Of a DNA stretch of 64,000 nucleotides, positions 607 to 55,331 are shown piece by piece. Positions within the stretch are counted from its first letter, which is position 1. Each line of letters opens with the position of its first letter. The notes beneath the pieces were generated by a model, which saw only the letters and a list, made by a program, of their open reading frames with translations, did not search any database and was not told the origin of the DNA. Source of the DNA: Macrostomum lignano (Eukaryota); NCBI GenBank assembly GCA_002269645.1, contig NIVC01000143.1, positions 186,001-250,000 of the forward strand. The letters run 5' to 3'. Both the position numbers and the translations under genes were made by a program.

Positions 607-12204
<11,598 letters not shown>

Positions 12205-12213
<9 letters not shown>

Positions 12214-12340
12214 CTGCTGACTGCTGACTGCTGACTGCTGACTGCTGACTGCTGACTGCTGACTGCTGACTGCTGACTGCTGACTGCTGACTGCTGACTG
12301 CTGACTGCTGACTGCTGACTGCTGACTGCTCACTGCTGAG
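12205..12340 (+). repeat. (CTGCTGA)n 7-bp repeat starting at the stop codon
   Basis: TGC TGC TGA (12205-12213) continues as about 18 copies of CTGCTGA. Confidence 0.9.
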
Positions 12341-12997
12341 CTGCGGATCGTCAGCTGCCAAGTAGGTGTGCTGCACGAATTTCTCACTTTCAGCTGGGTA
12401 ACTTTTCCGCCATTCCATTTTTCTAAGCCAATACTTTGTTAAAATACTTTTCCGTATAGCATAACGCTTGCTATGGTACAAAATAACTTTGCTTATTTAT
12501 TTTTCGTTTTAAAACTAGCTGTACATGCAACTAACGTTTAAATCTCGTTTTGACCGATTGTAGCCTGCATACATCCTCTGCGATCCCTTTAGTTCATTTA
12601 AAATCAGTGTTAATAAATCTTTTAAATCTGTCACTCTACGTTAACGGTGAATTTGTATAATTTCTTCATGTAATTTGTGTGTGGTCTTATGATATACTTT
12701 AATATCCAAAACAACAATTTTGTGTGATATATCGCTACCTACAAGAATAAATCCCATTCTGCATCTCCGCTTTTGAGAATATGGAGCACTTCATCTGCGA
12801 GTGTCCCGCTCGTCTGCTACCTGAGGGCACCCTGCACTCTCTCTAGGGGGGTGGGGGCACGCTGCAGACACTGGCACTACTGAGCACTACCTGCACGTGG
12901 TCGCCAGGGGTGAGCAGAATAGGTGTTAACGCCTCCCCGCTGCATTTGGATGCCCAGAGCCCCCTGCAGCCGAGTCAAGTCAAGAAGGAGAACTCAC

Positions 12998-18112: not shown

Positions 18113-20466
18113 ACAACAACAACAACAACAAGGTACTGCTCCCGCCGGCCACGCAGTAGCCAGAAAGGGGGGAGCAGTCAGAAAGCGCGTCTCTGGGCCA
18201 TCGCCCTCAGGAAGTCGCATCCCCCTGCTTGGTCCGGGGCGCCAGCGTCACTCAGAAGTCGGTCAGGGTATCGCACCGTTCGCCTTTGGCCTCGCCTCTG
18301 TGGTCCCTGCAGCTTGAGCAGCAGCACGTCGTGTAGCGGCTCAGGACAGCGGGCCTCCGACCGGATGACGTGGCCAGCCAGTCGAAGTCGCCGCCCGCGC
18401 AGCAGGTCAGAAGGCCGCGTCAGGCGCGCCCTCGTGTAGAGCGCGGCATTGGTCTCGCTGCCTGGGCCGCTGCGCACTCCGAAAGCCGCACGCAGCATTG
18501 CCGCATGCGCAGCGTCCAACTGCCTCTCCAAGGCGTCCGTCAGGGTCCAAGTCTCGGCGTTGTACAAAAGGACAGTCTCGACGACTGCATGAAACAGCCG
18601 AGCCTTGAGCCCGTCGTCCAGGGCCTCAGATTGGAGCCCGGAGCGCACAGATCGAAATGCGGCCCAGGCCAGTCCTCGTCGTCTCTTCAGGTCGTCGGCA
18701 ACGTCCGGCACGGAACCGCCGAGGTACACAAAGCGCTCGCAGCGGGTAAGCATAAATGCATTCCCGGCAGCGTCTCGGTAATTGATCTCGGCCGGCAGGT
18801 CGGAGGGCACCGTGAACACTACCGTCTTCCGCGCGTTCAGCTTAAGGCCGACCCGCGCCGCTGCCGCCGTCAGGCCATCAAGCAGCCGCTGGGCACCTTC
18901 AGCCGTCGATGAAAGTAGCGCGAGGTCGTCCGCGTAGCCGAGAACGGAGAGCCGCTTCTCCGGGTGCCGCCGACTCGTGCGTCTTCTCAAAAGGAAGCCG
19001 TCATCCAGGTTGGGCAGGCCGGTTCTCAGCACCCAGTCCAGTGCCAGCACAAACAGAAAAGGCGCCAAAGTGTCACCCTGCAGCACGCCTGACGATGTGC
19101 TGAATTGGTCTGACAGTCCATCTGGCGTCATCACCGAAGCGTTCGTGTCCTGGTACATCGCCATGATGGCGGAAATCAGTTGCTCCGGTACATTGTACGC
19201 ACGAAGCACGAGAGGCAGCGCGCCGCGAGCCAGCGAGTCGAAGGCCTTGAGGAAATCAATGAAGATCACCACGAGACTTGACTGATGGATGCGCGCCTCC
19301 TCGATGATGCGGCGGAGGGCTAGGATCTGCGTCACTGTGCCGCGATGCGAGGAACCCGTTCTGCTCAGTTCGCAGGAACTGGTCCAGCACAGGCTGTAAC
19401 CGAGCCAGCAGCACCCGGTTGAACAGCTTCGCGGCGCAGGACATAAGCGAGATCCCCCTGTGCTCCTCCTTCCGTGTCGTGCCTGGCTTCTTTGGGATCG
19501 CGACGATGTGCGCGGTTGTCCACTCGCGGGGCGCGGCATCTCCAGAAAGGACACCGTTCATCACACGAGCCACCTCAATGGCGACCCTTGTGACTCGCAG
19601 CACCTCGATAGGCACCTCGTCCGGCGCGACCTCCCGGCGCCTGGCGAGCGAACTGCACAACGTCGTTGCTGGTCACTGGCTGGGTGTTGAAATCTTCCTG
19701 CGACGGCAGCGCCGTCTCGAGCGGCAGTGGCATCACTTCTGGCAGAGGCGGTGGCAGCGCGTTGACGATATCGGCGAAGAAGTCGCGTAGCTCATTTCTG
19801 CGCGCTTCTGGCGTGTCGCCGGTCAAGTTTAGCACCGTTTTCTTCTTGCGACCAGTCAAGGCGTTGATTGTCGGCCATACGAGCCGATTCCGTTGGTCGA
19901 GCCCTGCGGAGGTGACGCTTCGGATGGCATCGTCAACAGCGGCTTGCTGCCGCCTGACATAAACGTCTGACAGGGCTTTCTCGGCCTCTGCCGTCGGTCT
20001 CCTGGACCGTCGCAGCCTCTCGACTGTCCGCCTCGCCTCTTGAACCTCCTTGTCATCCGCCCAGACAGGGAGACTACGGGTTGCAGATTTCATCAGTGGC
20101 AGAGTTTTGCTCGCTGCCGTCACTACTGCCGCGCTAATTTCAGAGTAGTTACCGGTGCTCGCAGACTCTCCCAGTGCGGTGGCGAACGCGTACGCGAACC
20201 TGCCGCGGGTGCTAGAATCTCGCAGACGCAAAGCCCGGAAATAGCGGCGTGGGGGTCGCTTGGGCGGCCTGTACAGCGGATCCCGGATGCGAAGGTTGCA
20301 GAAAAGCAGGCGGTGGTCGGATCGGATGGACAGCGGGGCCATCGTGTCTCAGTCTGTCACCCGACTGCGCTCGCGGTTACGAACAAGAATGTGGTCGAGC
20401 TGGGCCCGGCGCGTCGTGGCGTTTCGGCGCGCGTTCCGCTTTCTTCGCTTACAACCAGCAAAAGTC
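18113..20466 (-). mobile_element. RTE-clade LINE, 5'-truncated and frameshifted (APE end + RT), (TTG)n tail
   Basis: QLDHILV...SDHRLL (APE); HRGISL...; IFIDFLKAFDSL, GVLQGDTLAPFLF and LGYADDLALL (RT) across ORFs 19575-20342, 19256-19660 and 18178-19554. Tail (TTG)n at ~18113-18131. Possible diverged TSD gttaaaccga / gttataccga. Confidence 0.92.
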
Positions 20467-23402: not shown

Positions 23403-26400
23403 ATCACCATTTTCTGGACGAGTAGCGACCGCCGCTGGCTCCGCTGTACTGGAAGTCCAGCCGGGCGCCCCGGTCAGTGTCCGGGTAGGCAGCCGAGTCC
23501 GAGTAGCCGCCAAGGGCCGAATAGCGAAGACCGGACGAGGCTTCAAAGTCTGAGTCGAACTTGCCTGCGACAAAGAGAAAATTGAGCGAGTGACAATGTG
23601 AGTGACGAGTAGAGTGACAATGTGAGTGACGAGTAGAGTGACAATGTGAGTGACGAGTAGAGTGACAATGTGAGTGACGAGTAGAGTGACAATGTGAGTG
23701 ACGAGTAGAGTGACAATGTGAGTGACGAGTAGAGTGACAATGTGAGTGACGAGTAGAGTGACAATGTGAGTGACGAGTAGAGTGACAATGTGAGTGACGA
23801 GTAGAGTGACAGTGTGAGTGACGAGTAGAGTGACAATGTGAGTGACGAGTAGAGTGACAATGTGAGTGACGAGTAGAGTGACAATGTGAGTGACGAGTAG
23901 AGTGACAATGTGAGTGACGAGTAGAGTGACAATGTAAGTGACGAGTAGAGTGACAGTGTGAGTGACGAGTAGAGTGACAATGTGAGTGACGAGTAGAGTG
24001 ACAATGTGAGTGACGAGTAGAGTGACAATGTGAGTGACGAGTAGAGTGACAATTTGAGTGACGATTAGAGTGACAATTTTAGTGACGAGTAGAGTGCCAA
24101 TGTGAGTGACGAGTAGAGTGACAATGTGAGTGACGAGTAGAGTGACAATGTAAGTGAAGAGTAGAGTGACAATGTGAGTGACGATGAGAGTGACAATGTG
24201 AGTGAGGAATAGAGTGACAATGTGAGTGAAAATGACGATATGTAGTGCCAGTTAGAGTAACCATATCGATAGACAAGTCGGCAATGTGAGTGATAACGGG
24301 AGTGCAAATGCGAGTGATGGGTAGAGTGTTAATAAAGAGTCTCACTAGCAGCTGTTATGCTCAAACCCCTAAGTCCCACACGCCCACCCCCAAGCACTCA
24401 CTGCCATAGATGGGCTCCCTGTAGCTGCTATATCCGGCTCCGATTCCATCGTAGCTCGGGGACGCGACGTTGCGTCCGTAGCGACGGCTGGGCGAGCTGC
24501 TGAATGTCGGCTTGAAGTCCTCCTGAATTGTCGGAGAATGTCGTGAAACTCGAGGTTTAAAGTGGCTGATGAGTTGTGGGATCAATTGTAGGATCGGTTT
24601 GGGGATGCGTTGAGTATCATAGCTGAGTGAACGGTGCTGAACAAAAGCAGAAAAAATCCATCAAATAACGGAAATAGCGACGCGTTCTCAAACTATACTG
24701 ACAAATATACTCAAAAGTGAGCTGAAGAAAGACTTTAAGAATTAAAGTCAGGCACCGAAAGCAGCTTCAATCAGCCATAATCGAGTTTTTTAAAAGTTTG
24801 CGTGACTAATAATTGATCATGCCGCAACTTGTGAGGCGAGTCCACAGCTCACTCTGGTAGATTTCATTCTCCAACAGCTGAAATGAACTTTGATCCAAGG
24901 CGGTTTGCCGCCTGACACCGATGGACGCTGATGCTGCTCATGATGATGATGATAGTTATCAAGGTGCTGCTGAGTGAGCACCTCAGCTGATGAAGGCTTC
25001 ATCTTGTGGGGGTGGTGGCGGAACTGATATTGATGTATATTAATTCTTTCTGACAAGCAGCTAGAAGGCAAGCATTGATGCTCGTTTCAATTAACTCTGA
25101 GCAGGCACACAGACACATACGCAAGCATGTAGAGCCTTAGCTAGATAAATTAGGATTAGAATAGATCATTAGCTAGATTGATTAGGATTAGATTAGATCA
25201 TTAGCTAGATGGATTAGAATTAGAAAAGATCCTTAGCTAAATGGAAGAGGATTAGACTACACCATTAGCCCATTAGCTAGACGGGTTAGCATTCGAATAG
25301 ATCATTAGCTAGATGGATTGGGATTACATTAGCTTGTAGATTTTAGCTACATGGATTAGGATTAGAAAAGAGCCTTAGCTAGATAGATTAGAACTAGATT
25401 AGAGCCTCAGCTATATAGATTAGGCTTAAATTAGGGCCTTAGCTACATGGATTAGGATTAGATTAGAGCCTTAGCTACGTAGATTAGGATTAGATTAGAG
25501 CCTTAGCTACATGGATTATGATTAGATTAGAGCCTTAGCTACATGGATTAGGATTACATTAGAGCCTTAGCTAGATGGATTAGACTTAGATTAGAGCCTT
25601 AGCTACATGGATTAGACTTAGATTAGAGCCGTAGCTACATGTATTCGGATTAGAAAAGAGCCTTAGCTAGATGGATTAGAATTAGATTAGAGCCTCAGCT
25701 ATATAAATTAGGGGTACATTACAGCCTTAGCTACATGGATTAGGGTTAAATTAGGGCCTTAGCTACATGGATTAGGATTAGATTAGAGCCTTAGCTATAT
25801 AGATTAGGGTTAAATTAGAGTCTTTGTTACATGAATTAGGATTATATTGGGGCCTTAGCTACATGGATTACGGTTGGATTAGAGCCTTAGCTACATGGAT
25901 TAGGATTAGATTAGAGCCTTAGCTACATGGATTAGAATTAGATTAGACCTTACCTATATGCATTAGGAATCATAATAATCATGGCTTACACGAGTTTGTC
26001 ACAATATGCATTCAGCCAGCACTTATGATCATTCTCCAGACACCTGAGCACGCACATTCACACGGTATAAATTCACTGCTCACCCTTCTGGCGAACTTTC
26101 CATCTACCTGGAGGCTCTGCTGGCGCTGAGCCAGGTCAATGGCGGCCTGGCACACCACCTTGGCGGGGAACGCGCCCTTGTCCAGCGCTCTCTGCAGGGT
26201 GCTCACTTCGCAGCGGCTCAGATCCACCGCCTCAACCACCGCCTTCTGCTGGTCGTCTGGGATCGACTCTCCTGCGGTTTGGGTTAAGCGTTTGGCGCTT
26301 GGGTTAGGGCTAGGTTACTCGGTGCACAATATTGACTTTCTTGATTGACATATTGATTGCTCAACTTCCACACTTTAAAAGCTACCAATCCCACATCTCC

Positions 26401-27705
26401 GATTCCTGAATCCCGGATTTCCGAATCCCACACCTCCAAATCCAAAACTTCCGAATCCCACACTTCCGAATCCCACTCCTTCAAATCCCACACTTATAAA
26501 TCCCAAACTTCCAAATCCCACACTTTCGAATCCCATACTTCTTAATCCCACACTGTCAATTCCCATACAAAATAATGAGTCCCACACATCACACACTGAC
26601 AACCCACACACTGAGGTTGCAAAATCACACTCAGCAACCCAATAGTTCCCACCTGAAAGTCCCACGCACACAACCTGAAGTCCCACACACCCTGAAATCC
26701 CACACACCCTGAAGTCCCACACACCCTGAAGTCCCACACACCCTGAAGTCCCACACACCCAGCAGTCCCACACCCAGCAGTCCCACACAACCCAGCAGTC
26801 CCACACACCCTGAAATCCCACACACCCTGAAATCCCACACACCCTGAAATCCCACACACCCAGCAGTCCCGCACACCCTGAAATCCCACACACCCTGAAA
26901 TCCCACACACCCAGCAGTCCCACACACCCCCGGCAATCCCACACACCCCGGCAGTCCCACACACCCAGCAGTCCCACACACCCCCGGCAGTCCCACACAC
27001 CCAGCAGTCCCACACACCCAGCAGTCCCACACAACCCAGCAGTCCCACACAACCCAGCAGTCCCACACAACCCAGCAGTCCCACACAACCCAGCAGTCCC
27101 ACACAACCCAGCAGTCCCACACAACCCAGCAGTCCCACACAACCCAGCAGTCCCACACACCCAGCAGTCCCACACACTAACAGTCCCACACACCAGCAGT
27201 CCCACACACCAGCAGTCCCACACCCATCTCACCGGCAGTAAGCAATGTCTCGGCAGCCTCATACAGGGTGTCGTGGCTGGCCCTGTAGTCAGCCGGCACG
27301 CTGGTGGCCAACTTGGCGAACTCCTCGGCCGTGAGGCTGCCAGCCCGGGCCAAGTCCAGCAGGTGATTGTCGATGACGCCAGACAGAACCTGGGCCTCGC
27401 CGCTGGCGCCGGCGTCGCCGCCCATGGCAGCCGCGGTGCTGCTGACGATGTCGCAGAGCACCGGCGAAGGCATCTGCTTGAGCTCCTCCTGACGGAACCG
27501 GTGCAGCATGTTGCCAGCGAGCTGGAGCAGCCGCGGCCTGCACTGGCAGCTGTACTGCTCGCTGGCCAGCAGGGCCAGTCGGATCCAGTCCCCGCTGATC
27601 ACCTCGGCGAGGGGTGTCGGCTCCGGCAGGCTGCCGATGACGCGGTCGAGGACCTCGCCGGTTGGCTCCTTGGGCTCATTTTGCTGCTGCTGCTGGGGAT
27701 AGTGG

Positions 27706-27793
<88 letters not shown>

Positions 27794-29839
27794 AATGGCA
27801 ATGTATCAGGTTATGTCAGCAAGTCAGCTTGTCAGAGTGCTGTCAGAGTGCTGTCTCACCTGCTGCTGCTGCTGCTGTTGCTTCTTCTTGTCTCCGCCAT
27901 CTGCCTCTGCATCGGATGCCTCTCCAGCCTCCTCCTGCTGCTGCTCCTCTCTTGCCTCCTGTTGCTCCTGCTGCGGCTCCTCCGCAGCCTCCTCACCAGC
28001 GTCATCATCGTCCTTCTCCTTCTCGGCGCTCTTCTCCTGCTCTTTCTTCTTCTCCGGCTTTTTCTGCTGCTGCTGCTGCTTCTGCAGGTCGGTGTCGCGC
28101 TGGAACACGCGGTGCAGGTAGCGGGTTGCCAGCTCTGCCAGGGGCCGCAGCTGCCGCTCGCCCTCGGAGCCGCAGGACTTGGCCAGCCGTTCGAACCAGT
28201 CTAGCGGCAGACGCAACAGTCGATCCACGACCAAGGCGTCGACTCGGCCAGGTTTTGTCCAGACGTCCATGACTGCGGCGAAGCAGCGCTCGGCGATCTT
28301 CGCCTCCTCGGCCGCGGGTCCGAGACAGGCGGTACGGCTGATCAGGTCCACGATGGGCGACAGGGAGCGGGACATCTGGGCGGAGCGGATGATGTCGTCA
28401 AGGTAGCGCTCCGTCAGGTCGATCAGGTTGTTGTCGCCGGCCATCTTCAGGTACTCGGCGCCGCATCTGAGGGGATGTGGCGGGGAGATGATGAGGTCAT
28501 AATCCATCTAGCTAATGATCTACTCTAATCATAATCCATCAAGCTAATGATCTACTTTAATCATAATCCATCTAGCTAATGATCTAGTCCAATCCCAATC
28601 TATCTAGCTAATGATCTAGTCCAATCCCCATCTATCTAATGATCTACTCTAATCTCAATCTATCTAATGATCTACTCTAATCTCAATCTATCTAATGATC
28701 TACTCTAATCTCAATCAATCTAGCTAATGATCTACTCTAATCTCAATCTATCTAGCTAATGATTTACTCTAATCCTGATCCATCTAGCTAATGATCTACT
28801 CTAATCTCAATCTATCTAGCTAATGATCTACTTTAATCTCAATCTATCTAGCTAATGATCTACTTTAATCTCAATCCATCTAGCTAATGATCTACTCTAA
28901 TCTCAATCTATCTAGCTAATGATCTACTCCAATCTCAATCTATCTAGCTAATGATCTACTCTAATTCCAATTTATCTAGCTAATGATCTACTCTAATCTC
29001 ATCTATCTAGCTAATGATCTACTCTAATCTCAATCTATCCAGCTAATGATCTACTCTAATTCCAATTTATCTAGCTAATGATCTACTCTAATCTCATCTA
29101 TCTAGCTAATGATCTACTCTAATCTCAATCTATCTAGCTAATGATCTACTCTAATTCCAATTTATCTAGATAATGATCTACTCTAATCTCATCTATCTAG
29201 CTAATGATCTACTCTAATCTCATCTATCTAGCTAATGATCTACTCTATTCTCAATCTATCTAGCTAATGATCTACTCTAATTCCAATTTATCTAGCTAAT
29301 GATCTACTCTAATCTCATCTATCTAGCTAATGATCTACTCTAATCTCAATCTATCTAGCTAATGATCTACTCTAATTCCAATTTATCTAGATAATGATCT
29401 ACTCTAATCTCATCTATCTAGCTAATGATCTACTCTAATCTCATCTATCTAGCTAATGATCTACTCTAATTTTGATCCATCTAGCTAATTATATAGTCTA
29501 ACCTCAATCCAACTATCTAAAGATCTAAAAGACGGCTGAGCCAGAGCAGGAATCAAGCACTCAGTCAGCAGCTCACCTGAGCTGGGCCACATTCTCCAGG
29601 CTGATGTCGATCTTCTTATTATAGCAGAAATCCGCAATAACTTTGAAGCAAGCAGCTCCGCCAGGAAATTCTTCAAGCTCGACTTGCTCTTTCCCAGACT
29701 CTGCCGCGACCTCTTTAAAGTAATCCGACTTGATGTAAAGCGGGAACTTGTGCAGCTTGAGCTCTTCGCCTTCAACAACGATGGTGACATCGGACAGCTC
29801 GCCGCTGTCTCTGTACTTCATCAGGTCTAGCAGAGACAT
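23403..29839 (-). CDS. BTB/POZ + NPH3-domain protein resembling the plant NPH3/RPT2-like (NRL) family
   Basis: Confident exons: 29839-29577, 28466-27860, 27692-27233, 26271-26108. Probable exons: 24877-24853, ~24630-24402 and 23564-~23403. Motifs: SDVTIVV..LHKFPL..KS, FPGG..CF..IADFCY, NVAQLRCGAEYLKM..NLI..TE.YL; NPH3-like C-terminal part EEFAKLATSVPADYRASHDTLYEAAETLLTA...AVDLSRC...FPAKVV.Q. The junction into the ~24630 exon is unresolved. Confidence 0.8.
23587..24235. repeat. 24-bp minisatellite (GTGAGTGACGAGTAGAGTGACAAT), ~27 copies
   Basis: Direct reading; fills the last intron of the NRL-like gene. Confidence 0.95.
25135..25960 (+). repeat. ~32-bp satellite (GATTAGGATTAGATTAGAGCCTTAGCTACATG)
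   Basis: Degenerate tandem array in NRL-like intron 4; inverted relative of 28495-29500. Confidence 0.9.
26380..27225. repeat. 17-18-bp graded minisatellite (CAGCAGTCCCACACACC / GAAATCCCACACACCCT)
   Basis: Begins within about 10 nt of the exon-3 donor (27232) and degenerates towards 26380. Confidence 0.9.
27708..27793. repeat. (GAT)n trinucleotide microsatellite, intronic
   Basis: About 28 perfect copies inside the 27859-27693 intron; the poly-M and poly-D ORFs are artefacts. Confidence 0.95.
28495..29500 (-). repeat. ~32-bp satellite (+ strand ATCTAGCTAATGATCTACTCTAATCTCAATCT)
   Basis: Tandem array filling NRL-like intron 1; reverse complement of the 25135-25960 family. Confidence 0.92.
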
Positions 29840-38333: not shown

Positions 38334-40011
38334 ATGTCCGCAATAGAATGTGCCACCACCGTCCTAACCATTGTACTGTCGATGGCTGCTAGTCAGACAC
38401 TGGTGCCTCCCAAGTGCTTCGTTGATGAGGAAGTCAAGCCTGGACTGGTGTGCAACGCTATACTACACTTTCACGACAAAGTGGTAGACCAGGGACAGTA
38501 CTGCAGAGGCTGCCAGCACTGCAGCGGCGAGCACGTGTCCCTGACGGCTGATAACAGTTTCGTTTGGCTGCACTTTGAGCACCCGGACCTGCTGGTGCAG
38601 TTCCTGGCGTGCGGCGAGCTGCAAAAACCCGATCGACGCTGCAACTCTGGAGAGGTGGCGGCCATCTTTGACAGTCCGCACGATGCCTGGAGACCCCAGT
38701 TAAGGAGACACTCCTGCAGCTGTCCGGTTGCCATGGGGAATAAGGTGTGTTAGATGATAATGCATTTCTGCAGCTGTCCGGTTGCCATGGGGAATAAGGT
38801 GTGTAGCTGATGATGCATTTCTGCAGCTGTCCGGTTGCCATGGGGAATAAGGTGTGTAGCTGCTGACGCATTTCTGCATCTGTCCAGTTGTCATGGGGAA
38901 TAAGGTGTGTAGCTGATGATGCATTTCTACAGCTGTCCGGTTGCCATGGGGAATAAGGTGTGTAGCTGATGATGCATTTCTGCAGCTGTCCGGTTGCCAT
39001 GGGGAATAAGGTGTGGTAGATGATGAAGCATTCCTGCAGCTGTCCGGTTGCCATGGGGAATAAGAAGGTGTGTAGCTGATGAATCATTCCTGCAGCTGTC
39101 GGTTGCCATGGGGAATAAGGTGTGTTAGATGATGAAGCATTCCTGCAGCTGTCCGGTTGCCATGGGGAATAAGGTGTGTAGCTGATGATGCATTTCTGTA
39201 GCTGTCCGGTTGCCATGGGGAATAAGGTGTGTTAGATGATGAAGCATTTCTGCAGCTGTCCGGTTGCCATGGGGAATAAGGTGTGGTAGATGATGAAGCA
39301 TTCCTGCAGCTGTCCGGTTGCCATGGGGAATAAGGTGTGTTAGATGATGAAGCCTTCCTGCAGCTGTCCGGTTGCCATGTGTCAGAGGTAGCTGGTGAGG
39401 CACATGTGCAGCTTTCCGATTGCCAATATAATAGACACAATTTCTTTCCTTGGACATTAACTATCTCTGTATTTAAGGTGCCGCTGTACCAGCTTCGCTC
39501 CTGGAGTCTGCAGAACAACCAGTGGGTTTACGAGTTCGTCTGCCCCATCGAGCAGTGCCGAGTTCCAGATTCCCTACTGCCATCAGCTCCAGCCCTGCCC
39601 GCGACCTCGACTGCTGGAACAGCCGCAGCCACACCAGACCGACAGCCGGCAGTTGCAGGGTCGCCAACTTCAACCGGACGTCCGACAGTTTGCGCTGAGA
39701 AGCGCCAGTCAACGTCTGGCGGTCCCGTCTCCGTGACCTTCAAATGCTCGTGCCCGCAAGGCTACCACTGCATTATTCACGACATCGTACTGAAGGCGGA
39801 CGGCACAGCGGCTGGAGGCAAATCCGGCGCGGGAGGCGGCGGTGCCAGCGCTGGCGGCGGGGCCGGCGGTAGCGTCGGAGGAGGAGGCGGCGGGGGTGGC
39901 GCAGCGGGCGGCGGCGGAGGCGGGGACGGCAGCTGGATACCACTGGTCTCAAGGTATTGCCAGCGAGTAGCGCTGCCCTCAACCAATGGGACAGACGATT
40001 CAGGAAAGTAG
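38334..40011 (+). CDS. Secreted cysteine-rich Argos (giant-lens)-like protein, 2 exons
   Basis: Exons 38334-38744 and 39478-40011 join in phase 0 (GNK|VPL). Hydrophobic N-terminus MSAIECATTVLTIVLSMAASQ. Cys motifs HSCSCP...YEFVC and CSCPQGYHC...SRYC parallel Argos HCRCP...YLFAC and CQCPKGHRC...SGYC (recalled from memory, not searched). Confidence 0.6.
38712..39378 (+). repeat. ~54-bp tandem array duplicating the exon-1/intron junction, ~12 copies
   Basis: Unit CTGCAGCTGTCCGGTTGCCATGGGGAATAAG|GTGTGT(T)AG.TGATGA.GCATT; the first copy is the coding exon end. Confidence 0.93.
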
Positions 40012-42243: not shown

Positions 42244-45200
42244 CTAGTTACAAACCCTGACAGCAGCAAATGGATCGTCAGTCCCGGTGCACAGGACCAA
42301 CTCCTGACAGCTGGAATAGTTCAATAATCGATCAGTCAGTCTCTTCAAATCAGCCAATCCGTCAGCTTCATCGCCCAGCTTCTCCAGCATCTTCATCGCT
42401 AAATAGTGCATCCAGTAGACATTGGTTTTGGGCACGAACTGACGCCAATTGTCGTTGCACTCCGATCGCATCAGGCGGTAGATTTCGAACTGATAATCGC
42501 CTTCTCCAGCGAATAGCTCTTCATCGTCACTCAGGTCGGTGAACATCACGCAGCTGGGGCTGGGACTCAGCCGGCTGATGGTGAAGTCTATGACAGTGGC
42601 AGCGATGCCGCGGGTTGCTATGACAACTGGACGCCCGGCAACCAGGTAGGATGCGGACGAGCCCGCGGCGGTTTGGATCTGAGTGAGAGTTGGCACAAAA
42701 CGGAGGGCATAAAGGCACTGAAGGGTGGCTTGGAGATGGGGTGTCAGATCACATCACAAAAAAAGTTGAAGGATGAAGTATCTGGGATCTTGCATTAGAG
42801 CTCAAGGAGTCGACATTCAAGGATTGATAAAAAATTGGAATCAAGATCTGGGATAAAAGATTAGAATAAAGATCTGGGATCAAAGATGACCTGGGAACAA
42901 AGATTAGAATCAATATCTGGGAACAAAGATTAGAATCAATATCTGGGAACAAAGATTAGAATCAAGACCTGGGATCAAAGATTAAAATCAAGACCTGGGA
43001 ACAAAGATTAGAATCAAGACCTAGGTTCAAAGATTGGAATCAAGACCTGGGAACAAAGATTAGAATCAAGACCTGGGAACAAAGATTAGAATCAAGACCT
43101 AAGAACAAAGATTAGAATCAAGACCTAAGAACAAAGATTAGAATCAAGTCCTAAGAACAAAGATTAGAATCAAGACCTGAGAACAAAGATTAGAATCAAG
43201 ACCTCGGATCAAAGATTAGAATCAAGACCTGGGATCAAAGATTAGAATCAAGAAGACCTGAAAATTGTATCAAATCACAATTTTGTTCAACAGTCCAATA
43301 AGCCAGCCAGCTCACCAGCACATTGCCCCAGTGCAGATCCCGATGCTCAAACTGCAGCTGTGCCTCAGCAGCAGCCAGAGAGGCAGCCACCTGCCCAGCC
43401 AGAGCCAAAGCCTGCCAGCCATCATCAATAGAAAAAGTCTCCAGCGGTCCGCCAGCGAAGGCCAGTCGCATGGCGAGCCACAGCTGACTGGCTGGCAGCT
43501 CGGCAGGGCAGTCATTCTCCGTGGCGCAGTTGGCGGCAAACTTCTGCCAGGCTGTTGCCAGACTGCGGTGCAGGCGGCCGCGGTGGACGCTGGCCGAGAG
43601 CAGCTGGGCGAAACCGGACGAGCGATTGCGGCGATAGCGACTGGACAGGGCCGTGAGCTTGCGGGCTATGAGGAGCTCGGGAAGCACCTGGCGTAGAAAT
43701 GTTTGAATAGAATTAGTATCTAAGCTTTTTTCTTCAAGGTTAGGCCAATAAGCAGTTCTTGGATTCTAAAAAAGAGCCGTACTATATCCCCCAGATCATT
43801 TGAATAAGCTAATGTATCCGAAGATTCTAAGGTAGACAAGCTAAAGCTACCAACCCCAGGACCCTCTGTTGCTGGACCAGCCACTCAGATCCTCAGTTGC
43901 TGGGCCACCAGCCTCCCAAATCTTCAGTTGCTGGGCCGCCAGCCTCCCAAATCCTCAGTTGCTGGGCCGCCAGCCTCCCAAATCCTCAGTTGCTGGGCCG
44001 CCAGCCTCTAAGTCCTCAGTTGCTGGGCCGCCAGCCTCCCAAGTCCTCAGTTGCTGGGCCGCCAGCCTCCCAAGTCCTCAGTTGCTGGGCCAGCCTCACA
44101 AGTCCTCAGTTGCTAGGCCAGCCTTTCAGATTTTAATTGCTCGGCACCCTCCCAGATCCCAATCACTAACTAAGAATAAAATTGCTTATCAAACCAACCA
44201 GACCTCATCGAAACTCTTCTGCGGCTCTCCGTTGATTTTTCGCCTTCCAGCAATTGGCAGCACCTTGACGGCTAGACGTCCTTGACCGTCGCTGCTGGCC
44301 ACAGAGTACACTTCTCCGAACACGCCTTCGCCAAGTTTCTTGACCTCACTCTCAGCCTCAGCCGTGTCTGCAGGCATAAACTTGCACCATTGCAGAGGTG
44401 CAGTTTGATCGCACATTCGCAACACGCAGTCCCGATGCCGACCCTCAGTGTACAGATTCCAGTAGGTGGCATTCATTGAAGCTTCAACAGATGCTGACGC
44501 TGCCGCGGTGGATGAAGAACAATTGCTAGTTTGATCAGCCGTAGCTGATGATAGCAACGAAGCAGCATGACGATCCAGTTTATCTGATTTGTCATTAACA
44601 TCATCATCAATATCGTCATCCCTGCTGGAGCTCTTGTCCGAGGCAAACACTTCAACTCTGCGCCTACTGCTAGCACGTTTTCTAGCCCGAATATAGAAAC
44701 TGCCGCAGTGCCTAGCCGTGATTGGCTGACAACGTCGGCTAACTTCTTTAACGGAGTCTTTGTCACGGAATGCTACAGCCAAGTGAGGCCCAGGAGCTGC
44801 TGCAGCCAATAACAGTGGCGATTGATACTCAATATTAGACACCTGGTGATGAGTGGTGGACGAAGAAGAGTCTTCTCGGCTGCAAGCAAGGCTAAGTCGA
44901 CGTTGTTTTACATGCTGCAGCTGCTGCATCGGTGTACTAAAGTGCAAGGCAGTTGGATGGAACTTCGAAGCCGACAATAAACCAGAGTTATTAGCATGGC
45001 AGTTATTCGACATTGGCTGTTTGATGTCGCTTCGAGAAGTCACAGCTGGCGACTCAGAAGACACAGACTTCGGCTCGTGCACCGATTCAACTACAAGAGA
45101 ATACTTTTCAATTGAACTAAAATCTGGCACTTTATCTGCCGAAGTTGGCTGAGGTTCCGGTTGCTTCTTTGCAACTTTATTTCCTTTATTGGCTACAACT

Positions 45201-45597
45201 TTAACAACACCTTCCTGTGGACCACTCCGAGTTGGCAATAGCAGCGGGCTGGCTGTTGTCAAGTTGGTACCGCTGGTTACAGCAAAGCCCAGCGCTTCAG
45301 CCAGTCTGCTTCGAGACGAGGAGCCATGCAACTCCATAGACGAAGTATTCGGCAGTTTGTGGGACTTCGCTTTGCAATCTTTTTTCTGTTGCCCATCTTC
45401 TGGGTCGGCAAAGAGGCTGTCATTAAATCTATTTGGCAAGTTAGCATTAGTGCGAGTCTGCAATGGAGCCTGCGCTCTTTGCTTGCGCAATGCTGGCCTA
45501 GAATGCTGCTGCTTCTTCTTGTTGTTTTGTTGTTTGTGCTTATGCCGTACCATCACAATGGAATTTGGTGTGCTAAATGAGACAGTTTCTTGAGGCA
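42244..45597 (-). CDS. HASPIN: Haspin serine/threonine kinase (histone H3-Thr3 kinase); first exon not located
   Basis: Exons 45597-44204, 43687-43316 and 42678-42244: KLGEGVFGEVY...AVKV...NGEPQKSFDE|VLPELLI...FEHRDLHWGNVL|I...IDFTISRL...LFAGEGDYQFEIYRLMR...W..F.PKTNVYWMHYL are diagnostic haspin motifs after a long low-complexity N-terminus. The 45597 acceptor is phase 1, so an upstream exon exists. Confidence 0.93.
42840..43255. repeat. 26-bp minisatellite (GAACAAAGATTAGAATCAAGACCTGG) in haspin intron
   Basis: Direct reading. Confidence 0.9.
43865..44125. repeat. ~31-bp minisatellite (TCCTCAGTTGCTGGGCCGCCAGCCTCCCAAA) in haspin intron
   Basis: About 8 copies. Confidence 0.9.
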
Positions 45598-46595
45598 CTG
45601 AAATGTTAGTGAAAATTCTGAAGGCAAAAATGTTACAAGTTCATATGATATGCTCTATACTGATGAGGTTTTAAAGGACCCAAAATTTACATATGGTAAC
45701 TAGACATGACTAGACATGACATGACATCTATCATATGGTTTTTACTGCTCAATGAAAATTAATAAGTTGCTGTTTTTTAACCTTCAGGCCTTATTAGATA
45801 CTTTATAAACTTTGATATTGTTTGTATCTGTATACTATCATGACATAATATTTAGACACAGAAAATTAAATTTGCTGTATAATGTTTAAAGTTCCATTCC
45901 ATATTTTTTATTTGGTTATATTTGGTCTTTTTCATGTATAACTAATATGAATTGTACAAATAAATTATATAGACATTTGAATTAGCATAAAGAGATAAAC
46001 TAAAACATGATTTTCTGACCTTCTGATCTTCTGACTGATATTATCCATTTCATTTGTCTGATTTATAACATCTTAAATTTAAGCCTTTTAGATACTAGAT
46101 CACAAGTCTTGGTGACTATATGCTAAAAATTGTCACTAAAGTTAAAATACATTCTATAAAGAAGTTAGAAAGAAAAATTACTTTGCATTTGATAAAATGA
46201 CTGCCAATTATCAGAGGCAAAAAAGTAAAATATTATAAGTAAAATGGTTGAATTTAAGGAATCTAAAGGTTATTTTTTCACTTTAGTATTTCGGATTCAA
46301 TTTCCTATGTCAGGTTCAGAGATTTAGTATAGTTGTATATATATCATATTTGCAATTAATACAAATTTTCAAAGTGATATCATTTTACTTAAGATACTTG
46401 TACTACTATATAGTTCTATTTAATTTAAGTTAAAGTGGGCTCTATTATTATCTACCATTTGACGAAATGACCACATTACTGTTTGACAAAAAGGCTTTTA
46501 ACAAATGGTATTTGAGGAAATGTCCTAAAACCATTGTAGCTGCACTGCAGGTTATGAACTTTGTAAGATATACAATTGCTACAATTCCCAATAAT

Positions 46596-53234: not shown

Positions 53235-55331
53235 TCACCTCGGCGTGAAGACAATTTTGTGCTCAGCCGGAGCCCGAATTCCTCCGCCGTGATTCTCGGT
53301 GTTGTCTTTGATCTCGCTGATGCTGCGCCGCTCTGCTGGGTCCAGGCCGAACCTGTAGCGCTGCATCAGTCTCGTGAAGAAGACAAACAGCTCCATGCGG
53401 GCGAGGCTCTCGCCAAGGCAGGCTCGCTTGCCCGAGCCGAACGGCACCACCGACTCGTTCGGGCTGAAGCGGCCCTCCGCGTCCAGGTACCGCTCGGGCT
53501 TGAACTTCTCCGGCTCCGGGAACACTCTCGGATCGCGATGGATGCCGTAGATGTTCGGCACCACCACGCTGTCAGCGGGAATGCGATAGCCGCAGATGAC
53601 GGAGTCTTCAACGCAGCGGTGAGCCACGCCCATGGGAACGAGGGTGCCGAGCCGTTGCACCTCCTCCAGCACCGCTACCGTGTAGTGCAGACTGCCTTTG
53701 TCCTTCATTGTTGGCATTCTCTCCGTGCCAACGTTGACTCGAATCTCTTCGAACACTTTCTCAGCCACGTCCGGGTTCTCGATCATGTACAGGATGCCCC
53801 AGCGCAGCGTGTTAGAGGTGGTGTCGGTTCCGGCCACGAAAAGGTCGCGAATGGCCATGGCGAGGCGGAGGTCGTTGAATATTCTGTCGCTTTCTGCAAA
53901 AATTTCGAGCTGGTTGAGTGACACTGACAGACGAATTCAACTGTGCGACTGTTTCTGAATGAATTCTGTACCGCAATAATATATAGCAGCGAAAGTTTCT
54001 AAAAAATTTCGTAACTTCTCTAATCCTCAAAAGTATGGGGTTACAGTGCCTGGATCATAGATATCATATTTTCTACCCGAGTAGCTTAAATATTGATTTC
54101 AGTAGCTTAGGGACATGGACACTCTTTTTTGAGAATTTCATAGGACTTATCATTAAGTAAGAGTTGATGTGTTTAAAAATTGTGTATGGCTGCAACATTA
54201 GAGACTACTACAGTCCTAAATGTGCCTATGAACTTAGAGTTAACAAGTAATTGTTTTTTGTCTCAACACTGGTGGTTTTTATCTTAAACGGAGGCTAACA
54301 TTTTCATTAGCAGTGCCAAATAGTGACAAAGTGTTTGTGAGATCTTCATCAGATATAAAAAATTCCGATTAGGAGAGCTTTCACAGGTATCTTAGTTGGA
54401 CAGTCCAAGGTGTTCAGATAAGCTCCCATAGTCTCCATATGAGATTTGAAAATAGTACAGCAAAATACTCACCTAGATTAGTCTGATGCTGCAGGTGCGC
54501 ATCGATGTAATCCCTCGGCTCAGACTGCATGTCCGCATCGCCCTTGTGCTTGGCCACCTGCTCTTTGCAGAACTGCAGCAGCTGCCGGCTCAGCTGAATC
54601 ACTCGCCGCCTCTCCGGTCGCAGCAGCATCAGCTTGGCCAGGAAGCTGAACTGCTCAAAGTACTTGTAGTTCGCACCCAGCATGATGTTCATGTGTCTAG
54701 CAGCTCGACGTTGCGTAAGGGACTGGAACATGTCCAGCAGTTTGGGGAATCTCGGATCCTCCGTGGCTGTGCGAGCGCCGAACACGAGCTGACAGATGAC
54801 GTTGCTGACGGCGGGACTGAGCAAGTCGGTGGTGCTCAAGGCCTGCCCAGCCGGAGTCGAGTCGATGGCTTCGCAGAGCTCGCCAGCCTCCCTCAGGATG
54901 ATCTCCTCACCGCCCTGTCTGCCGAAGCCGAAGTCGCGCAGAGTTTTCAGCGAGAACCGCCGGTACTCGCGCCACAGCTCGCCCTCGGTGGACACAATGC
55001 CACCGTCGCTGCCCAAGGTCGGCTTCTGCAGCACCCGGACTGGCCGGCCGATGAATCGTTGGCCCTGCTTCACCATGGCCTCGTCGAAGGCTTCGAAGTT
55101 GTTGAGGATGTAGACTGGCTCGAGACCGTAGTAGAGAGTGACCAGAGGCGAGTTCGGGAAGCCCTCCAGCATCTGAGAGGCCAGGTTCTTCTTCATGTAC
55201 GGCAGGCTGCCTACCAGGGGCATCCAGCCTGGACTGGGCGGCTCGTTCGGCTTTGGTGCCTTCTTGACGCAGAGAAAATACAACAGCAGCACAGCCCCGG
55301 TAATGAGGCCCATGGCTATTAGAGTCAGCAT
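53235..55331 (-). CDS. Cytochrome P450, clan 2, intact, 2 exons, ~505 aa
   Basis: Exons 55331-54473 and 53893-53235 join in phase 1. TM anchor + PPSP, WREYRR (WxxxR), AGTDTT (I helix), EVQR (ExxR), PERY and the heme motif FGSGKRACLG are all present. Confidence 0.95.

Follow-up and report, generated by a model that had tools for sequence, protein, structure and literature searches.

Arabidopsis NPH3 is reported to dock on CUL3 as an adaptor, and the plant NPH3/RPT2-like (NRL) proteins in general (NPH3, RPT2, NCH1, NPY/MAB4, DOT3 and NRL5 of Arabidopsis) present an N-terminal BTB domain, an NPH3 domain and a disordered or coiled C-terminal extension, in the same order as the protein described here. 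NPH3 is called plant-specific in passages of PMC1257465, PMC4327156 and PMC11313873. The gene under study lies in the flatworm Macrostomum lignano, within a stretch of 64,000 nucleotides (contig NIVC01000143.1, positions 186,001 to 250,000 of the forward strand) that is referred to, at its whole length, as the window. It occupies the minus strand (29839-23404), comprises six exons and encodes a BTB-NPH3 product of 599 amino acids. The explanation that best accounts for the observations as a whole, with a probability of about 0.75, is that of a resident, vertically inherited metazoan BTB-NPH3 gene, whose product would work through a CUL3-adaptor mechanism.

The novelty resides in the reading and not in the sequence, since databases already carry animal proteins with automatic NPH3/RPT2-like labels. 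The M. lignano entry A0A1I8FJK2 is automatically labelled 'NPH3 domain-containing protein' in the UniProt/NCBI pipelines, a Haliotis protein 'BTB/POZ domain-containing protein At5g48800-like', one from Mya arenaria 'DOT3-like protein', and those from Xenia sp. and Plakobranchus 'root phototropism protein 2(-like)'. A first-pass annotation of the window, produced by a model from the sequence alone, had started from the premise that NRLs are plant proteins; this agrees with the plant-specific wording of the literature passages above, but the surprise is made smaller by the existing UniProt and NCBI labels. Among the titles and abstracts of papers mentioning NPH3 and metazoa, no description or test of an animal NPH3 member was found.

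When compared with plant NRLs, the window protein also shares the position of a variable linker, which in the flatworm is an acidic, Gln-rich insert between the two domains. On the contrary, it belongs to a separate animal clade with about 20-24% identity to them, reads DKGAFP where plants have QNERLP, and ends in ...SRKW instead of the plant RxS-x-S-COOH 14-3-3 site. It is further distinguished by lacking the clear post-NPH3 coiled coil that plants and many of the remaining animal members possess; in these animal members a helix or coiled coil follows NPH3, while the plant RRxSxS-COOH end is present in none of the animal members compared. A C-terminal coiled coil and/or a terminal RxS 14-3-3 site is described for NRLs in passages of PMC10953443 and by Sullivan 2021 as cited in PMC11909140, and this feature is variable among plant NRLs too. 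Judged from these comparisons, the window gene is in the NRL superfamily but outside any plant subfamily.

The automatically annotated metazoan NPH3 proteins share with the window protein the animal clade, the architecture, the N-terminal signature M-D-F-x-x-F-R-x-S-G-E-L-S-D and, in spiralians, a basic-aromatic C-terminus; the window gene differs from them in its longer acidic/Gln insert and in having no C-terminal coiled coil. Spiralian C-termini consist of a basic and then an aromatic residue (...SRKW, ...SRRW, ...PTKW, ...SHRY, ...YPRY, ...YHRF, ...SFRY; members P0002, P0183, P0007, P0011, P0012, P0016, P0019, P0176-P0180 and P0041), often after Y/F-x-P-Y-S, their plant counterpart being the RRxSxS 14-3-3 site. 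Regarding the BTB-BACK-Kelch adaptors (KBTBD2, KBTBD4, KLHL3 and vaccinia A55), the first ~200-220 residues of the predicted model superpose on CUL3-bound BTB-BACK structures, whereas the Pfam BACK match and the Kelch propeller are missing and the C-terminal part is an all-helical NPH3 domain. The model suggests that the window protein most likely works like these adaptors, yet it is no member of their family.

Gene model, domain membership and predicted fold

The spliced translation matches GenBank PAA89610.1 (hypothetical protein BOX15_Mlig013387g2, Macrostomum lignano) at 100% identity, and the introns are GT-AG in 5/5 cases. The splice choice that yields the 599 amino acids, and the tandem arrays detected in the introns by the program TRF, are as follows.

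23404-29839, minus strand: whole coding span, BOX15_Mlig013387g2, with spliced translation equal to PAA89610.1
29577-29839, minus strand: exon 1, with ATG at 29839-29837, residues 1-87 plus 2 nucleotides and donor GTGAGC; N-terminal helix and most of the BTB domain
27860-28466, minus strand: exon 2, residues 88-290; BTB end, BACK-like helical bundle (~100-215) and disordered acidic/Lys/Gln-rich insert (~216-290)
27233-27692, minus strand: exon 3, residues 291-443 plus 1 nucleotide; poly-Q end of the insert and helical NPH3 core, terminating at a phase-1 intron conserved across animals
26084-26271, minus strand: exon 4, residues 444-506; C-terminal NPH3 signature ESIPDDQQKAVVEAVDLSRCEVSTLQRALDKGAFPAKVVCQ and last long helix, aligned with the plant LYRAID...DCQKLS...QNERLP block
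24402-24522, minus strand: exon 5; Ser/Tyr/Arg/Gly-rich disordered tail
23404-23564, minus strand: exon 6; tail end ...GGRYSSRKW and stop TGA at 23406-23404
28501-29527, no strand assigned: intron 1 minisatellite, 32-nucleotide unit in 32.7 copies
27707-27797, no strand assigned: intron 2 array, 3-nucleotide unit (GAT x30)
26403-27223, no strand assigned: intron 3 array, 15/17-nucleotide units
25130-25968, no strand assigned: intron 4 array, 32-nucleotide unit
23588-24229, no strand assigned: intron 5 array, 24-nucleotide unit

The span given in the first-pass annotation is correct to within one base, its end at 23403 falling one base beyond the TGA stop, and the motifs that it quoted (LHKFPL, FPGG, IADFCY, NVAQLRCGAEYLKM, FAKLATSVPADYRASHDTLYEA, AVDLSRC and FPAKVVCQ) are all found in the spliced minus-strand protein. 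The acidic, Gln-rich insert that it described extends over residues ~216-300 and is predicted to be disordered, and the introns that it called host-style are, besides their GT-AG ends, filled with minisatellites of a kind seen throughout the window. Every intron is largely occupied by its own tandem array, with up to 33 copies and 77-97% matches, and comparable arrays are dispersed over the whole window.

An alternative in-frame donor exists at 26108, 24 nucleotides upstream of 26084 in exon 4, as well as an alternative in-frame acceptor at 24636, 114 nucleotides from 24522 in exon 5, which would add 38 amino acids. Their joint use is also in frame and gives 629 amino acids. This splice model was put aside, the 599-residue one matching the deposited protein exactly, although the longer form may represent an alternative isoform.

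Both expected domains are recognized by Pfam. BTB (PF00651) scores 46.7 bits (cut-off 20.5; E 4e-12) at residues 7-98, and NPH3 (PF03000) also 46.7 bits versus a gathering cut-off of 27 (E 4e-12), residues 340-462 of the deposited protein matching profile positions 104-251 of 258. Residues 301-498 taken alone match plant NRLs down to E 2e-12 (phmmer). When profiles of 19 animal and 18 plant relatives were compared by hhalign after removing the BTB domain from both, they aligned with a probability of 99.8% (E 2.3e-29) over 333 columns, which extend from the helices right after BTB to the plant LYRAID...DCQKLS...QNERLP block. The C-terminal NPH3 block aligns column for column with plants (HDTLYEAAETLL ... 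VDLSRCEVSTLQRAL ... FPAKVVCQ), the YRAID and QNERLP strings being absent from animal members. Pfam NPH3 is likewise matched by 18 of the 40 non-plant relatives scanned, and is pre-computed for most matches in two further searches. By these scores the similarity between animals and plants is far beyond chance, and the protein is confirmed as a genuine BTB-NPH3 (NRL-type) protein, the architecture that the first-pass annotation had read from its motifs.

An AlphaFold2 model of the window protein, built on a 52-sequence alignment, reached a predicted local distance difference test (pLDDT) value of 79.6 and a predicted template modelling (pTM) score of 0.70, with residues 1-230 and 300-505 being confident. 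The BTB fold exceeds 90; values up to residue ~230 are mostly 88-97, dropping towards the end to 78 and 64 in two blocks of 10 residues, and fall below 50 for residues 242-273 of the acidic/Gln insert and from 512 onwards (tail 512-599), both predicted to be disordered. After BTB the model is all helical, with no beta-strands past residue 55. The top Foldseek matches in the PDB are CUL3-bound KBTBD2, KBTBD4 and the BTB-BACK part of vaccinia A55 (196-222 N-terminal columns; TMt 0.65 for A55), so that the first ~215 residues would form a BTB domain plus a BACK-like bundle of the CUL3-docking kind.

A sequence search of the PDB gave matches to BTB only, KLHL3 and KBTBD2 among them, and no solved NPH3 domain. 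The NPH3 part was also viewed in the AlphaFold2 model of a BTB-less homologue (P0020; 58% identity to the window protein in the HMMER search and 45% in the model alignment), which has a pLDDT of 87 and in which this part appears as stacked helical hairpins. Its Foldseek search returned no significant PDB match, with weak resemblance to TPR, PUF, ARM and designed-repeat proteins at E>=0.004, and thus the NPH3 fold is not tied to a known fold.

These data bear on whether the protein might be an ordinary animal BTB-BACK protein, its NPH3 match being a spurious echo of BACK-like helices. Such an identity would fit the structurally BACK-like segment right after BTB, as well as the fact that the strongest single Pfam stretch spans only the last third of the NPH3 model. 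Nonetheless, NPH3 scores 20 bits over its cut-off, yet there is no match to Pfam BACK (PF07707) even at E<=10; the profile-profile alignment spans the whole post-BTB region up to the LYRAID/QNERLP block; and no Kelch (as searched with Pfam), PHR or MATH domain accompanies the all-helical C-terminus. The Pfam check on BTB and PF03000 advised at first pass matches NPH3, and the best homologues are not ordinary animal BTB-BACK proteins. A plain BTB-BACK identity is thus refuted at the sequence level by the NPH3 score and the BTB-less profile alignment, and we consider it exceedingly improbable.

Animal distribution, inheritance and genomic residency

Searched exhaustively with HMMER, 1.84 billion representative proteins gave 709 matches at E<=0.001; for each search, the matches viewed were the best 120-150, many of them from environmental sequences. 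The best 67 of the 709 are all of the non-plant type, with the N-terminus given above, while plant NRLs rank below them. Homologues were identified in sponges (Oscarella lobularis, Corticium candelabrum), a soft coral among cnidarians (Xenia sp.), flatworms (Macrostomum, Schistosoma, Heterobilharzia, Opisthorchis, Paragonimus, Hymenolepis), many bivalve and gastropod molluscs (including Haliotis, Mya arenaria and Plakobranchus), annelids (Owenia, Capitella), nemerteans (Tubulanus, Lineus), rotifers (Adineta, Brachionus) and hemichordates (Ptychodera, Glandiceps), placing the BTB-NPH3 family in at least eight animal phyla. Most of these genes are on scaffolds of several to tens of Mb or on chromosomes, and animal-only neighbours are found beside some of them, namely FGF in Xenia, a 7tm_1 G-protein-coupled receptor at the Oscarella pair and a SMAD MH2 gene beside an environmental member. 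In a further search, which was word-indexed, the matches outranking the first plant protein include no name of a vertebrate, arthropod, nematode or echinoderm, an absence that is only suggestive because of the word index.

Some features of individual members were also recorded. The genes of Oscarella lobularis and Xenia sp. are intronless single open reading frames (ORFs), and those of Macrostomum, Ptychodera and Haliotis have introns. In O. lobularis two tandem copies are separated by 80 bp (3001-4695 and 4776-6674 of the extracted locus), while the Xenia ORF runs from 3001 to 4674. The JGI freshwater metagenomes 3300008106, 3300008109 and 3300008966 hold a divergent intronless BTB group (P0054, P0060, P0061, P0081 and others) in which internal NL(I/V)(S/N)(M/I)AGDIL repeats replace most of the NPH3 domain; one such gene (8593-10407 of the extracted locus) stands beside SMAD-MH2, ZIP and Tmp39 genes and therefore presumably derives from a small uncultured animal. 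An intron-bearing collinear homologue with 49% identity in the BTB exon is located on a 308-kb contig of the metagenome assembly ENA ERZ26052287, at 10001-12700 of the extracted locus.

Two neighbour-joining analyses (68 sequences by 428 columns and 58 sequences by 445 columns) were carried out with Kimura distances and 100 and 200 bootstraps. As regards the phylogeny called for at first pass, streptophytes are split from all animal sequences at 100% bootstrap. Within the animal part, monophyly is recovered for flatworms (93-98%), Neodermata (86-98%), molluscs (99-100%), rotifers (98%), nemerteans (100%) and hemichordates (100%); sponges branch first, and the window gene is placed in a group with its paralogue from M. 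lignano and other flatworm-like sequences. On these trees, the animal clade is sister to the streptophyte NRLs and not nested in them.

In addition, a phase-1 intron is found at the same alignment column in M. lignano (after amino acid 443), Ptychodera (365) and Haliotis (400). The phylum-ordered branching, together with this intron common to a flatworm, a mollusc and a hemichordate, argues for vertical inheritance within Metazoa, which is strongly favoured at least since the sponge-bilaterian common ancestor, and rules out a recent plant-to-flatworm transfer. The first-pass annotation had offered either an overlooked ancient lineage or horizontal transfer: the former is the one strongly favoured here, while recent transfer is rejected in view of the separate clade, its presence in at least eight phyla and the shared intron. 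A Brachypodium NRL has a phase-0 intron one column (~4 nucleotides) upstream of the animal phase-1 intron (exon 3/4 junction, 27233/26271); it was not counted as evidence of shared ancestry, since it could be a coincidence or reflect intron sliding.

Regarding the deeper origin, every identified match is animal or streptophyte, including a Mesotaenium-type alga, and no protist, fungal or other non-animal, non-plant name occurs among the matches looked up in a database that includes EukProt, with no survey aimed at protists, fungi or chlorophytes. These observations, as well as the intronless condition of the sponge and cnidarian genes, would be in agreement with horizontal transfer at a very early date, in either direction, between streptophytes and the animal stem lineage, rather than with descent from an early eukaryote. 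However, each of the two clades is monophyletic with respect to the other and has a long stem, a pattern that vertical descent with losses predicts equally, and absence outside animals and streptophytes is not established because only the best 120-150 matches per search were viewed, many of them environmental. Early-eukaryote descent with many losses and one very ancient streptophyte/stem-animal transfer are both possible and compatible with the data, the transfer being, in our view, distinctly unlikely.

Residency of this vertically inherited gene in the flatworm genome was evaluated from its surroundings. The same window contains an EGF/laminin-G gene, a non-long-terminal-repeat (non-LTR) reverse transcriptase, a haspin kinase gene and a cytochrome P450 gene; the features located are listed below.

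42244-45598, minus strand: haspin kinase gene with a long Ser-rich N-terminal exon, an ordinary animal gene
53235-55331, minus strand: cytochrome P450 gene of two exons or more (Pfam p450 238 and 103 bits), an ordinary animal gene
18178-20342, minus strand: non-LTR retrotransposon remnant (Pfam RVT_1 69 bits, ORF upstream), 3 kb downstream of the BTB-NPH3 gene 3' end
1159-2101, plus strand: second reverse transcriptase-like fragment
39337-40011, plus strand: ORF with weak CUB and cEGF hints and a long Gly/Ala run, probably the 'Argos-like' gene of the first reading

Among the neighbours named at first pass, the EGF/laminin-G gene ('Crumbs-like') and haspin were confirmed, whereas the 'Argos-like' label was not, the ORF at 39337-40011 having no Pfam family at E<=0.001. 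The G+C content at third codon positions (GC3) of the BTB-NPH3 gene is 0.80, compared with 0.76-0.78 for the P450 gene and 0.69 for the EGF gene. Paralogues g1 and g3 share the six-exon structure and are found elsewhere in the assembly, on scaffolds of 0.33 and 1.5 Mb; a more distant M. lignano paralogue group is Mlig026640. The window copy differs from g3 by 13 synonymous and 3 nonsynonymous codons and from g1 by 11 synonymous and 5 nonsynonymous ones, an excess of silent changes that points to purifying selection. As judged from these data, the gene is a resident, selectively maintained animal gene; the residency anticipated by the first-pass annotation stands on the animal flanking genes, the native GC3 and the paralogues with the same exons.

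That Macrostomum recently acquired the gene horizontally from a plant or alga, or that plant or algal contaminant DNA was joined into the assembly, would have its sole support in the textbook expectation of a plant-specific NPH3. It is opposed by the animal genes that flank the BTB-NPH3 gene in the window, by its native GC3 and by the three paralogues on separate scaffolds of 0.3-1.5 Mb. Moreover, the best matches are other flatworms and spiralians at 40-60% identity versus ~22% for plants, and the flatworm clade (93-98% bootstrap) is not nested in plants. We give this alternative next to no credence, contamination or a chimeric join being untenable given the flanking genes, GC3, paralogues and repeat-filled introns.

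Putative mechanism

We propose, at about even odds, that the protein forms dimers and serves a CUL3-RING ubiquitin ligase as substrate adaptor or scaffold. The BTB domain and the helices that follow it would dimerize and dock on CUL3, as in KLHL/KBTBD proteins, while the alpha-solenoid-like NPH3 domain would stand in for Kelch or MATH as the client-binding module. Regulation might be provided by the disordered insert and tail, through phosphorylation, docking or membrane binding. To our knowledge, animals have no phototropins, other AGCVIII kinases or PIN carriers, and the animal client must then differ from the plant one. On this view, an older module would have been put to lineage-specific use in plants, in phototropin and auxin signalling.

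Several points weigh against the proposed explanation as a whole or against its parts. Expression of the gene is taken from public annotation, and CUL3 binding is deduced from fold similarity of the predicted model only. When aligned with SPOP by eye, with no tool, the M. lignano BTB domain shows A-A-E-S at the phi-x-E position, against the CUL3-contacting M-E-E-S. The neighbour-joining trees have no outgroup and are therefore unrooted. Finally, passages of PMC11313873 (2024) attribute GTPase activity and a vesicle-trafficking role to plant NPH3 domains. Concerning the phi-x-E position, many other animal members read M-x-D/E in the same alignment by eye to SPOP, and the A-A-E-S of the window protein is compatible with the CUL3-adaptor proposal while being no test of it.

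Consistent with that last point, the protein might act independently of CUL3, as a membrane or trafficking scaffold or as an unconventional GTPase of the kind proposed for plant NRL5 and NPY/MAB4, its BTB domain only dimerizing. Several plant NPH3 domains show GTPase activity and RAB/VAMP721 interaction in the passages of PMC11313873 concerned. Outside the BTB domain, conservation between animals and plants is highest in NPH3, and the long, disordered tail with its basic/aromatic end is what one would expect of a segment that docks or binds membranes. On the contrary, the predicted NPH3 fold is all-helical and lacks a beta-sheet core of the P-loop type, and its Foldseek matches include no NTPase; those passages define no nucleotide-binding motif; and the N-terminal 200-220 residues best match CUL3-bound adaptors. 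A CUL3-independent function is therefore held to be somewhat unlikely, and the adaptor or scaffold role is kept as the working proposal.

Implications for the NPH3 family

At the sequence level the plant-specific statement on NPH3 is wrong, as a well-supported sister clade extends across much of the animal tree. A broader reading, put forward tentatively and slightly short of even odds, is that BTB-NPH3 would not be a plant invention but an ancient CUL3-adaptor/trafficking module older than phototropin signalling, kept in sponges, cnidarians, spiralians (schistosomes and tapeworms among them) and hemichordates, and lost in vertebrates, arthropods and nematodes. If so, the plant-specific label would have arisen because the family was lost from the classical model animals. 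The alternative of a very ancient exchange between streptophytes and stem animals would, if true, be at least as unusual.

Among parasitic flatworms, the family occurs in Schistosoma, Opisthorchis, Paragonimus and Hymenolepis, and it is not among the named vertebrate matches, which makes it a lineage-restricted gene deserving proper annotation. An animal clade without phototropin, PIN and auxin constitutes an independent system for the core function of NPH3. Should the ancient-module reading be true, an ancestral, light-independent function would be testable in Macrostomum, which is amenable to RNA interference and transgenesis.

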